The translations under genes were made by a program, and so were the position numbers. Source: Guillardia theta CCMP2712 (Eukaryota; Protista; Cryptophyta). Taken from it: 64,000 nucleotides of DNA. Of this stretch, positions 22,912 to 25,900 are shown piece by piece (the first letter of the stretch is position 1; every line of letters begins with the position of its first letter). Location: NCBI RefSeq assembly GCF_000315625.1, contig NW_005434600.1, positions 218,260 through 282,259 on the forward strand. The letters are read 5' to 3'. The notes below the pieces were generated by a model, which was given only the letters and a program-made list of their open reading frames with translations, was not told the origin of the DNA and searched no databases.

Positions 22912-25900
22912 ATGAAGGTCATCGCCGCAGTTCTGCTCTCTCCGCTGCTGATTGCAGGCTGCGAGGCGTATGTTGGTGCCTTCTCCCACCAGCTGTTGCT
23001 GCGTCCAATCGCTCCACTGAGCCGCTCGTCCGGAGCAAGGTTCCATGCTGGAGCTTCCCAGCCTCGATCGCTCTCCAGCAGGAGACTCCGGATGTCTGCG
23101 ACAGAGGGCACGGGGACGATCTTGAAGCTTGACACGGACCTGACGGGGGCATGGTCCAAGGAGGGTCAGAGGAGTAAGGACTGGTTCGACCAGCAGGAGG
23201 CGGAGAGGCAGAGCAAAGTGCAGAGTGTACGCGCTTCGCAGATCCTTGTGAGCACGATGGAGATGGGGAATGCGATCTTGGAGCAGTTCAGGAACGGCGC
23301 AGACTTTGAGGAGCTGGCGAAGCAGATCTCAGCCTGCGAGAGCACGAGGAAGGAGGGAGGAAACATCGGGTGGATGAATGCACAGGATGATTTCTTGGAT
23401 GAGGTTGTTCCGAAAGCAGTGCGGGAGGCTGTGCTGAAGAAGAAGCCGGGCGATGTTCTTCTTATGGAGTCAGAGCGGGGTGTACATCTCATCAAGGTGT
23501 GTGCAGCAAGAGTGTAGTAGACATGGAGCTAGTGATCGGATGAAATGCTTTTTGTTGGTGCTTGTTCTTGTTGGGTGCTGGTGTGATGGTTTGTAGAGCG
23601 TGATGTTGAGTTATGATGTGGACCTTGTGGGAGGACAGGGCGATCATGTAGAGATGAGTCATCGCGTCATTGTTGTGTCACGTTCTCTGCTTGATCAAGG
23701 TCGGCTAACGGCAATGTTTTAATCAGATTGAAGATGTCATGTACGATCTGAAGAGATTGTCCTTTCCAAGAGCTCGACCTTACTGTAATGATCTTATTCT
23801 TCCCTTCCTCTCCTCTCCTTCTCTCCTCTCCTCTCCTCTCCTCTCCTCTCCTCTCCTCTCCTCTCCTCTCCTTCTCTCTTTCCTTCTCTCTTCTCCTCTC
23901 CTCTCTTCCCTCCTCTCTTCCCTTCCCTTAACATCTCCGGCTCAAGTTTTCTTTGCCCTCCTCTCTCCTTCTCTCCCATCTTGTCCGCTCCTGTCCTATT
24001 TCCCTTCTCTGTTATCCTCTGCCACACAACGATAACATCTCATGGATCAGCACCGGACGGCAGTGCGTATATGAGGCCGTTGAAGGAGCTCATGAACGAA
24101 GTGAGAATGTCTTGAAATCTCTTGCCTGTTTGACTTGTCGCCTCCCTAAATGTCTTGTCTTGTTTGAAAAACGTGTGTGCTGTTTCAAATTTTTCTTTGT
24201 TGATTCAAACTATTGGGTGTTCTTTTAGACTTTTGATTCTCACGATTTCTTCAATTTTGTTCTCTGTCGCCCATTGCATGGCCCTCTTTCTTTGTTCTTG
24301 TTTTTCCACATCTCCTCCTCACATGTACACTTGTCAACAATATTTATCCCTGCCTCTGTGTTATCAGTTCGTTTTTTTTGTCTCTTACCATCTTTCTTTC
24401 TCACTCTTCCCTCATCAGAAACCAGATACGATCTTGACATACTCCATCGAGACCATGGGATGTCAGATGAATTCTGTAAGTTCTTTTCTCATCCTCTTTA
24501 CCTACAAACATCTTTCATATATCGACTTGTCCACAAGTCTCTGCAACCTCTTACGTTCCTCCCCCCCCTCCTGTTTGTAATATTTGTTCATGATCCGTAC
24601 TCCCCCTTCACTCCTCCTTTCTGTTCTCTTCTTCTCTTCCCCTCTCCTCTCCACTTGTTCTCCTTCCCTCTACTTCCTTCTCCCTTCTTCCTGCTCCACC
24701 TAGCCCTTTCCCTCCCCTCCTTCCTCTTCACCCTTCTCCCCTTCTTCCTCCTCCCCCCTCTCCTCCCTCTCCCTTCCTCACGACTCCTGCAGGCTGACAG
24801 CGAACGAATGGCTGGTCAGCTAGAGGCCATGGGCATGGCGAAGGTGGAGGATCCGTCCAAGGCCAACGTCGTCATCTACAACACTTGCTCCATCCGAGAT
24901 CACGCGGAGCAGAAGGTCTACTCCTACATCGGCCCGCAGGCAGACAGGAAGAGGAACGGAGAGAACGTGGCCCTCATCGTTGCTGGGTGCGTCGCGCAGC
25001 AGGAGGGAGAGAAGCTGCTGCGGCGGGTCCCTGAGCTTGACATGGTCATGGGCCCGCAGTACGCCAACAGGATCGGCGACCTGCTGGAGGACGTGGTGAA
25101 CGGGAACCAAGTGGTGGCGACGGAGGCGGCCCCGATGATGGAGGACTCAACAAGGCCAAGGAGAGAGTCGGAGGTCACGGCCTGGGTGAACGTGATCTAC
25201 GGGTGCAACGAGCGATGCACTTACTGCGTCGTGCCGACGACGAGAGGGGTGGAGCAGAGCAGACCCAAGGAGAGCATCAGGAAGGAGATGGAGGAGCTGG
25301 GGAGGAAGGGATATAGAGAGGTCACCCTGCTAGGGCAGAACATCGACGCGTGGGGAAGGGACATGGAGCCGAAGCAGAGGTTCAGTGAGCTGCTCGAGGA
25401 GGCGGCGACGGTGGAGCAGGTAGAGAGAATCAGGTTCGTGACATCGCATCCTCGGTACATGTCCTTGAGCGTCGTGGAGACGGTGGCGAAGCATGCGAAG
25501 CTGTGCAAGTGCTTCCACATCCCCTTCCAGTCAGGAGACGATGAGGTCCTGAGGAGGATGGGTAGGGGGCATACGATCGAGCAGTACCTCAAGATCGTCA
25601 AGAGGATACGCGAGCTGTGCCCAGACGCGGCCATCACGGCCGACTGCATCGTTGGGTTCCCTGGGGAGACGGAGGAGCAGTTTGAGAACAGCCTGAGGCT
25701 GATGGAGGAGGTGAAGTTCGACGTGGTGAATACTGCAGCGTACAGGTGAGGAGGAGAGGAGAGGAGAGGAGAGGAGAGGAGAGGAGAGAAGGATAGGAGA
25801 GGAGAGGAGAGAAGGAGAGGAGAGGAGAGGGAAGGAGAGGAGAGGAGAGGGAAGGAGAGGAGAGGAGAGGCGAGGAGAGGAGAGGAGAGAAGGAGAGGAG

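Follow-up and report, generated by a model that had tools for sequence, protein, structure and literature searches.

The locus described here raises the question of whether one nuclear gene of Guillardia theta CCMP2712 joins a plastid-targeted parvulin, a peptidylprolyl isomerase (PPIase), to the tRNA methylthiotransferase MiaB, and if so what the parvulin might be doing there. Within the window, by which we mean the whole 64,000 nucleotide stretch analysed and to which all positions refer, 22912-27728 of the + strand is confirmed as a single spliced nuclear gene of ten exons that encodes such a fusion; its product begins with a signal peptide and a transit-like peptide, which lead into a parvulin domain, and ~34 residues of linker connect this to a complete MiaB with UPF0004, radical SAM and TRAM domains. 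The coding sequence of the gene model is 2025 nt, or 674 codons, running from the ATG at 22912 to the TGA at 27726-27728, and is laid out as follows.

22891-22911, + strand: genome-matching part of the 5' UTR (21 nt); the transcript contig matches begin at 22891.
22912-23496, + strand: exon 1, leader and parvulin, ending in ...GVHLIK and then GT.
23727-23784, + strand: exon 2, completing the parvulin (IEDVMYDL, conserved) and opening the linker, with its end in phase 1; from transcript contigs and colinearity.
24051-24100, + strand: exon 3, linker, including PLKELM; in transcript contigs and colinear with the close orthologue P0002 (DGAAYFAPLKELLDK) and with Nannochloropsis (PLKELMAK).
24419-24475, + strand: exon 4, first UPF0004 strand of MiaB with the first cluster Cys, TGT at 24461-24463 (GCQMN); from transcript contigs and colinearity.
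24793-25745, + strand: exon 5, remainder of UPF0004 and the radical SAM core; from Pfam and NCBIfam TIGR01574.
26240-26305, + strand: exon 6, colinear by tblastn with P0002, P0016 and P0011, boundaries read by eye.
26428-26481, + strand: exon 7, from tblastn colinearity with orthologues and reading of the sequence.
27047-27107, + strand: exon 8, start of TRAM; the preceding intron contains an N gap at 26633-26732.
27377-27445, + strand: exon 9, TRAM; from tblastn colinearity and reading of the sequence.
27657-27728, + strand: exon 10, end of TRAM and the stop codon; from colinearity and reading of the sequence.

Transcript contigs from three studies (X1 of 2132 nt, X3 of 2108 nt, and X8) carry exons 1-5 in one record with no stop, covering 22891-23494, 23725-23784, 24051-24100, 24419-24475 and 24793-25739 at consecutive record positions. 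GT..AG ends are recorded for the joints 23496/23727, 24100/24419 and 24475/24793, and the junction 23784/24051 was derived solely from the record coordinates; the splice phases of exons 1-5 are 0, 1, 0, 0, and no second start was seen within these exons of the contigs. A first-pass annotation of this DNA had proposed a single frame with these phases running from parvulin to MiaB, and had asked whether transcripts end after 23517; the contigs bear out the frame and run from exon 1 through exon 5. The same annotation placed two small exons in the linker, where there are in fact three (exons 2-4) between the large ones, and took the gene only as far as about 24900, well short of the five further exons that lead to the stop codon. 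The transcript comparison covered 22600-26070, and for exons 6-10 the model relies on orthologous proteins and on the length of the contig: in tblastn full-length orthologues run colinear with all ten exons, and the coding sequence together with 21 nt of 5' UTR fits the 2132-nt contig, leaving ~80 nt as 3' UTR. The N gap is flanked by matches to P0002 residues 584-602 and 605-624, with only two residues between them, and these are encoded at the start of exon 8. The 16 extra letters at the 5' end of contig X8 have no match in the window, and a CAG repeat is found at 26079-26181.

The N-terminus of the predicted protein has the composition of a bipartite leader.

22912-22968, + strand: signal-peptide-like N-terminus, residues 1-19 and then Y (...AYVGAF), with a hydrophobicity maximum at residues 4-14.
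22969-23100, + strand: stretch of transit-peptide-like composition, residues 20-63, with no Asp or Glu, 7 Lys and Arg, and 9 Ser and Thr.

This is a hydrophobic N-terminus, then A|Y...AF and an acid-free Ser/Arg-rich stretch, and orthologue leaders carry ASAF-type motifs in their turn (TTAF|SP, SRAF|VP, TRAF|QF and TSAY|VP). Both the composition and these motifs agree with the leader that had been read from the letters. The further claim that MiaB lacks a separate leader is borne out as well, there being no start codon with a leader ahead of the MiaB part. From such a leader we infer delivery to the plastid stroma, with the signal peptide and a transit peptide beginning at an aromatic residue together expected to take the 674-residue precursor across four plastid membranes.

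The exons were searched singly, and exon 5 matches UPF0004 (PF00919) at 1.5e-22 and Radical_SAM (PF04055) at 1.7e-31 in Pfam. Against NCBIfam it scores 348.6 bits (5e-104) with MiaB TIGR01574, narrowly missing the equivalog cut-off of 355.3 because exon 5 supplies only 318 of the ~440 MiaB residues, and it scores 252 with MtaB and 225 with RimO, so that MiaB would clearly seem the best-fitting subfamily of the three. The parts expected of the enzyme are all represented in the gene. The three Cys codons for an auxiliary cluster site lie at 24461-24463, 24886-24888 and 24988-24990, in columns that are invariant in alignment A2, the radical SAM motif CxxxCxxC is encoded at 25204-25227 (GCNERCTYC, 25201-25227), and exons 8-10 are colinear with the TRAM ends of P0002, P0016 and P0011, all of which bear the tRNA-binding domain PF01938. 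Judged by family membership, this complete MiaB, which makes up the C-terminal two thirds of the protein, would presumably turn the i6A37 of plastid tRNAs into ms2i6A37. Bacterial and cyanobacterial MiaB has the same three-Cys UPF0004, CxxxCxxC and TRAM; the G. theta protein differs in adding the bipartite leader, the N-terminal parvulin and the linker.

The first-pass annotation knew of organellar MiaB only with UPF0004, radical SAM and TRAM domains and took the fusion to be singular, which it is not, as 107 of the 123 nearest MiaB homologues have the parvulin domain. The remainder are incomplete models, cut short at the N-terminus or present as fragments, and several of them retain a parvulin tail. 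The fusion is found in database sequences of cryptophytes, haptophytes, diatoms, brown algae, eustigmatophytes and chromerids, with named carriers in Nannochloropsis, Prymnesium, Chrysochromulina, Pylaiella, many diatoms, Vitrella and Chromera. Two divergent carriers, P0261 and P0269, were suspected to be bacterial; their contigs are eukaryotic, with genes for HSF, MSS51 and guanylate cyclase/PDE as neighbours. Rotamase, UPF0004, Radical_SAM and TRAM in this order is the standard architecture of plastid MiaB in cryptophytes, haptophytes, ochrophytes and chromerids, and its presence throughout algae with red-derived complex plastids suggests that the fusion is old and has been maintained by selection. 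Red-plastid relatives such as the Nannochloropsis gaditana protein (729 aa, 'adenosine tRNA methylthiotransferase'), those of Vitrella and Prymnesium ('Peptidylprolyl isomerase') and Chromera Cvel_6562 share the domain order, the xDVM extension after the parvulin and the linker motif, with MiaB parts that are 64-82% identical. Neither of the two MiaB searches placed a named red, green or glaucophyte protein among its best 120, and these listings, not being by taxon, do not establish absence from those groups.

The architecture is therefore already widespread in databases, an outcome that the annotation itself had named as counting against it, and some of its automatic names ('Peptidylprolyl isomerase', 'UPF0004/PPIC-type PPIASE domain') are taken from the PPIase. 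A description of the fusion was not found in literature on MiaB or methylthiotransferases with parvulin, PPIase or the apicoplast, nor in the ochrophyte plastid proteome paper; it is a conserved architecture that is apparently undescribed in the literature.

The 80 best bacterial loci are all cyanobacterial and 62-66% identical over exon 5, and in a second MiaB search cyanobacteria rank directly after algal fragments; by this measure the MiaB half is of cyanobacterial ancestry. In none of the 80 cyanobacterial loci is a parvulin fused to miaB or within 4 kb of it, and cyanobacterial MiaB has a median of 19 open codons, and at most 46, before GCxMN. A set of 24 residue states marks the fusion group, each occurring in 90% or more of 95 fusion proteins and in no more than 10% of the 80 cyanobacteria; it includes prolines at P0002 positions 292, 402 and 437. 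A quick maximum-likelihood tree of the MiaB core leaves the backbone open, placing the ~450-aa hits with haptophytes and P0002 and P0003 with cryptophytes; monophyly of the eukaryotic group is thus supported by the signature columns and not by the tree. A word search with the parvulin region returned only 7 proteins, and the clusters from two Atlas searches were all either generic parvulins or diatom MiaB. In a profile search of 1.84 billion representatives the 20 single-stretch hits that were scanned with Pfam were nearly all fragments of the fusion, the multi-stretch hits with names were bacterial multi-parvulin proteins, and no closer stand-alone parvulin source emerged.

The parvulin itself is readily recognised in exon 1, which matches Rotamase_3 at 2.1e-13 (51.3 bits, cut-off 22.5) and Rotamase at 6e-10 (40.4 bits, cut-off 21.7).

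23209-23496, + strand: parvulin (PpiC-type) core, residues ~100-195, from the Rotamase_3 match; the final strand runs over into exon 2.
23239-23241, + strand: CAG codon for Gln110, the Q of RASQ, at the first active-site His position of the parvulin, opposite the histidine of PrsA's KIRASHILV.

Among solved structures the G. theta domain comes nearest to the parvulin domain of Bacillus subtilis PrsA (1zk6, 5e-08; also 4wo7), with which it aligns over the whole domain through the RASHILV, GG.LGW and G.H.IK motifs. PrsA differs in that it works as a foldase outside the cytoplasm and has NC domains flanking its parvulin, and the G. theta domain in having Gln for His and a Cys in the S.C..T segment. 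For predictions of fold P0002 stood in for the G. theta protein, and its AlphaFold2 model has a pLDDT of ~90 over the parvulin, below 50 over linker residues 143-162, and a pTM of 0.54. The model shows the parvulin as a putatively independent folded module on a flexible tether of ~30-40 residues, and the tether would end in a short conserved helix that places the parvulin just ahead of the first MiaB strand.

The role that we prefer for such a module, albeit tentatively and at somewhat less than even confidence, is that of a tethered folding helper which would act after import of the unfolded precursor, either on its own MiaB or on some client that is handled beside it. Such a helper would resemble NifM, a PpiC-domain protein required to mature NifH, the [4Fe-4S] Fe protein of nitrogenase (PMC12691677). 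The likeness is that of a parvulin-type domain serving one Fe-S enzyme and is an analogy within a common fold family only, as NifM is a separate polypeptide with another client.

A rather less likely explanation, although one to be taken seriously, is that a cyanobacterial-type miaB landed downstream of a plastid-targeted parvulin gene and gained its leader as further exons, in which case the two domains would be independent or would be cut apart after import. The lack of both the fusion and a miaB-parvulin neighbourhood in cyanobacteria is consistent with this, as is the linker, which is flexible, poorly conserved and 28-132 residues long across the family. Prediction of a complex between P0002 parvulin residues 79-200 and MiaB residues 229-668 gave 0.28, below the mark of 0.34, which is no verdict either way and can be accommodated by independent domains; with this unsupportive docking and a pTM that comes without a fixed interface, the models lend no support to a specific intramolecular interaction between parvulin and MiaB. 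However, a parvulin that had simply come along with the leader should have been lost or separated somewhere, and no split version was found among the 123 homologues from four deep lineages. Furthermore the short PLKELM / G.L.GAL motif near MiaB is conserved, as is the xDVM extension, in which the D of 'xDV' is invariant (alignment A1).

At its active site the G. theta parvulin is peculiar. The replacement of the first parvulin His by Gln, correctly noted from the letters, is expressed, as the CAG codon has the same letters in every transcript contig. G. theta has only the second of the paired active-site histidines (GVHLIK), and it is the sole sequence with Gln among 91 aligned, the other red-plastid proteins included. 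The second His is invariant, Cys142 is present in 91/91, the Ser187 position is Ser or Thr in 91/91, and GG.IGW and KPGD are invariant or nearly so in the fusion-family alignment. With the site conserved in 90 of the 91, the alignment argues for PPIase catalysis having been retained in the family, Gln110 being on this evidence a local peculiarity of G. theta which may weaken catalysis there and need not abolish function. Mutants of the paired histidines in Pin1 keep activity, so Gln alone is no proof that catalysis is lost.

It had been suggested on account of the Gln that the domain is a chaperone or binding module rather than a catalyst, and one form of this idea is that it recruits some partner without catalysis, for instance a donor of sulfur or Fe-S, a ribosomal protein or a further tRNA enzyme. 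Besides G. theta, Gln is found in the divergent member CAK8998753.1, which lacks the Cys segment as well; this protein nevertheless keeps MiaB, and MiaB would appear able to dispense with an intact parvulin. AtPin3 and wheat TaPar32, chloroplast parvulins fused to a rhodanese sulfur-transfer domain (PMC9797600), hint that plastid parvulins and sulfur handling may be connected; the likeness lies in a plastid parvulin with a sulfur-linked second domain, and the partner is a C-terminal rhodanese, not MiaB. Set against the full His/Cys/His set in 90/91 and the behaviour of the Pin1 mutants, a non-catalytic module is improbable, and the idea cannot be extended to the family at large.

That two neighbouring genes have been misjoined, a parvulin ending near 23517 and a separate miaB, is scarcely credible: retention of intron 1 would bring in an in-frame stop at 23515-23517, and the raw RNA run X16 places a few of its only 7 reads, too few to speak to transcript starts or ends, within that intron (bins 23528-23759, depth 0.16-0.17), but the contigs of three studies splice exon 1 in frame to exons 2-5, orthologues in many species are single proteins, and the MiaB part has no leader-bearing start. 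Taken as a whole, we consider it probable that the locus is explained by one gene for a plastid-targeted parvulin-MiaB precursor, belonging to a conserved red-plastid family, with a tethered helper as the preferred role of the parvulin.

The G. theta member is in itself ordinary, a member of this family with an unusual Gln, and it is the family that is of wider consequence. Labels of 'Peptidylprolyl isomerase' on proteins of ~700 residues conceal a tRNA methylthiotransferase, and MiaB is a well-studied radical-SAM enzyme for which an accessory folding domain lies outside the textbook description. A bolder proposal, which we regard as unlikely in its entirety, is that cryptophytes, haptophytes, ochrophytes and chromerids have the fusion as a shared derived plastid character which cyanobacteria, red algae and green algae lack, that it arose once or was passed on serially with the red complex plastid, and that it provides a dedicated, tethered NifM-like maturation factor for a radical-SAM Fe-S enzyme, perhaps acting on the fusion-specific prolines 292, 402 and 437 (P0002). 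If the fusion is absent from red algae, it would be a compact marker of the shared history of red-derived complex plastids. The keeping of a PPIase in front of plastid MiaB in four deep lineages may reflect a need for maturation or for a partner after import across four membranes, or the acquisition of a leader by exon capture.

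Direct reading of the window places the parvulin-MiaB gene on the forward strand in ten exons, with GT..AG ends at every intron and a summed coding sequence of 2025 nt, that is 674 codons and a stop.

Exons of the parvulin-MiaB gene (window reading)
22912-23496, + strand, exon 1
23727-23784, + strand, exon 2
24051-24100, + strand, exon 3
24419-24475, + strand, exon 4
24793-25745, + strand, exon 5
26240-26305, + strand, exon 6
26428-26481, + strand, exon 7
27047-27107, + strand, exon 8
27377-27445, + strand, exon 9
27657-27728, + strand, exon 10, TGA at 27726-27728

Low-complexity repeats, CT-rich or GA-rich (ctcctctcct, gaggagagga; 23790-23900, 24590-24780 and 25750-25900), predominate in the introns and give rise to long spurious ORFs on both strands, for example 25221-26228 on the minus strand, and intron 5 contains a perfect (CAG)n run of ~100 nt (26079-26181). 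Runs of N mark assembly gaps at 22200-22330 and 26633-26732, the latter being intronic, between exons 7 and 8, as judged by tblastn with orthologues.

One spliced mRNA spans the fusion. Within the region compared with transcripts (22600-26070), single assembled transcripts from three studies (2132, 2108 and 1022 nt) run through 22891-23494, 23725-23784, 24051-24100, 24419-24475 and 24793-25739 with consecutive record coordinates and no reported sequence differences from the window; GT..AG ends are recorded for three of the four joints between exons 1-5, the fourth (23784/24051) being read from record coordinates only. The length of the 2132-nt contig corresponds to 21 nt of 5' UTR, the 2025-nt CDS and ~80 nt of 3' UTR. 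Every exon, including both linker exons, is colinear with three full-length orthologues by tblastn, so that the single fused gene proposed in the first-pass annotation is borne out, and two separate genes are effectively excluded by the assembled transcripts and the ordered alignment of all exons. Many runs contain ~0.37-0.38 of the words sampled from the 5-kb gene stretch, roughly the exonic share, and one run with 0.81 is probably the genome's own DNA. An AG precedes the base before 22891, where the transcript contigs begin; contig X8 has 16 extra 5' letters, matching nowhere in the 64-kb window, and contig X1 has 6. Such letters could stem from a UTR exon that lies upstream and beyond the window, from an added leader or from faulty assembly.

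When the gene model was searched one exon at a time, exon 1 matched the Pfam families Rotamase_3 (2.1e-13) and Rotamase, and exon 5 matched UPF0004 and Radical_SAM; against NCBIfam, exon 5 matched MiaB (TIGR01574, 5e-104) far ahead of MtaB and RimO. The MiaB part has all three UPF0004 cysteines as well as the CxxxCxxC motif.

With the MiaB part as query and a length window admitting fusions, the best 120 matches are all algal, most with precomputed Rotamase, UPF0004, Radical_SAM and TRAM domains, the closest being from Hanusia phi (96%). Named carriers include Nannochloropsis gaditana, Chrysochromulina, Prymnesium parvum, Vitrella, Pylaiella, Scytosiphon and the diatoms Seminavis, Nitzschia, Epithemia, Cylindrotheca, Cyclotella, Mediolabrus, Pseudo-nitzschia and Skeletonema, and the fusion is also found in Chromera velia. 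Thus the anatomy given in the first-pass annotation stands but the suggested uniqueness does not, as a local profile detects parvulin in 107 of 123 MiaB homologues and the architecture is widespread in algae. The remaining homologues are fragmentary, or start within the parvulin or linker, or else at the MiaB motif or shortly ahead of it (Baffinella, Tribonema, Ectocarpus, Phaeomonas and homologue P0031); they represent truncated models rather than genes that have been split. Neither MiaB search (one with lengths that admit fusions, the other limited to 175-556 residues) has a named protein from red, green or glaucophyte algae among its best 120.

A parvulin-plus-linker profile run against 1.84 billion representatives returned 330 matches below 1e-10, which by best local match are diatom-, haptophyte-, cryptophyte-, other ochrophyte- and chromerid-like; 20 single-stretch matches scanned with Pfam are almost all pieces of the fusion, and the named multi-stretch matches are bacterial multi-parvulin repeat proteins. 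Four bacterial proteins that score highly against the parvulin profile (P0164, P0215, P0241 and P0254, ~940-1040 aa) carry four to six tandem parvulin domains and are called 'parvulin-like peptidyl-prolyl isomerase' by JGI; shorter relatives occur in Anaerolineae, Muiribacteriota and Eremiobacterota. Two divergent fusion carriers on longer contigs are eukaryotic, judged by neighbouring genes. Some entries already bear automatic names, 'Peptidylprolyl isomerase' (UniRef) or 'UPF0004/PPIC-type PPIASE domain' (JGI), and our literature search found no paper describing the fusion. In this gene G. theta has its own copy of an architecture that is widespread and in databases, yet without description in the literature searched.

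The MiaB half is, by sequence, of cyanobacterial ancestry: all 80 of the best bacterial loci are cyanobacterial (62-66% identity), and cyanobacteria come directly after algal fragments when the search is limited to 175-556 residues. Cyanobacterial MiaB has few open codons before GCxMN (median 19, maximum 46) and no parvulin lies within 4 kb of miaB at any of the 80 loci; the fusion thus arose in eukaryotes. A single origin is suggested by 24 residue states that set ≥90% of 95 fusion proteins apart from ≥90% of the 80 cyanobacteria; the MiaB tree did not resolve the backbone. Three of these states are gained prolines, near-universal in the fusion group (292, 402 and 437 of the cryptophyte orthologue P0002; IGPQ, SRPK and MEPK in G. 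theta), where the cyanobacterial cores have Arg, Thr and His.

The parvulin domain aligns most closely with that of PrsA, G. theta SVRASQILV lying opposite KIRASHILV. The first active-site His is kept in 90 of 91 aligned sequences and is Gln in G. theta alone, the codon being identical in transcripts of the three studies; Cys142, Gly150, Gly153, Lys178, Gly180, Asp181, Gly190 and His192 are invariant, and position 187 is always Ser or Thr. Given this retention, the family domain looks like a working PPIase, and the G. theta copy is a local variant of uncertain consequence. In the divergent family member P0274 (CAK8998753.1, 628 aa) the first His is likewise Gln and the segment S.C..TR..GG.IGW is missing, but the KPGD...GWHIIRIEDVM end is kept; its parvulin appears to be decaying ahead of a MiaB.

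A natural full-length orthologue was used for folding. The AlphaFold2 model of P0002 (residues 55-668, 30-sequence alignment) has a confident parvulin fold (pLDDT ~90) and MiaB body, a disordered linker (model residues 143-162, pLDDT <50) and a short helix at the conserved PLKELL motif, and no fixed domain packing is indicated as pTM is only 0.54; two-chain docking of parvulin against MiaB scored below the mark and carries no weight for or against contact. The leader opens with a hydrophobic segment, followed by ...CEA|YVGAF and by a 44-residue stretch that is free of acidic residues and has 7 basic residues and 9 Ser/Thr, and diatom, brown-algal and eustigmatophyte orthologues have ASAF-type motifs at the corresponding site, making stromal targeting a sound prediction.

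Besides four further parvulin loci, the G. theta genome has three more methylthiotransferase loci: a second MiaB-type, likely a mitochondrial CDK5RAP1-like copy, one of e-MtaB/CDKAL1 type, and RimO.

Further methylthiotransferase loci (G. theta genome G000, by contig)
C76, 8444-8758
C6, 1195272-1195514
C12, 827035-827223

The parvulin may be a tethered helper, by analogy with NifM for NifH (PMC12691677). In the main rival, the parvulin and MiaB would merely share a leader as a result of exon capture and would not be functionally coupled; a third reading makes the parvulin a binding module, for which the plant parvulin-rhodanese fusion (PMC9797600) offers a suggestive parallel. Both the PPIase site and the fusion are conserved family-wide, and the protein is predicted to reside in the plastid stroma, where its MiaB part would carry out ms2i6A37 synthesis on plastid tRNAs.
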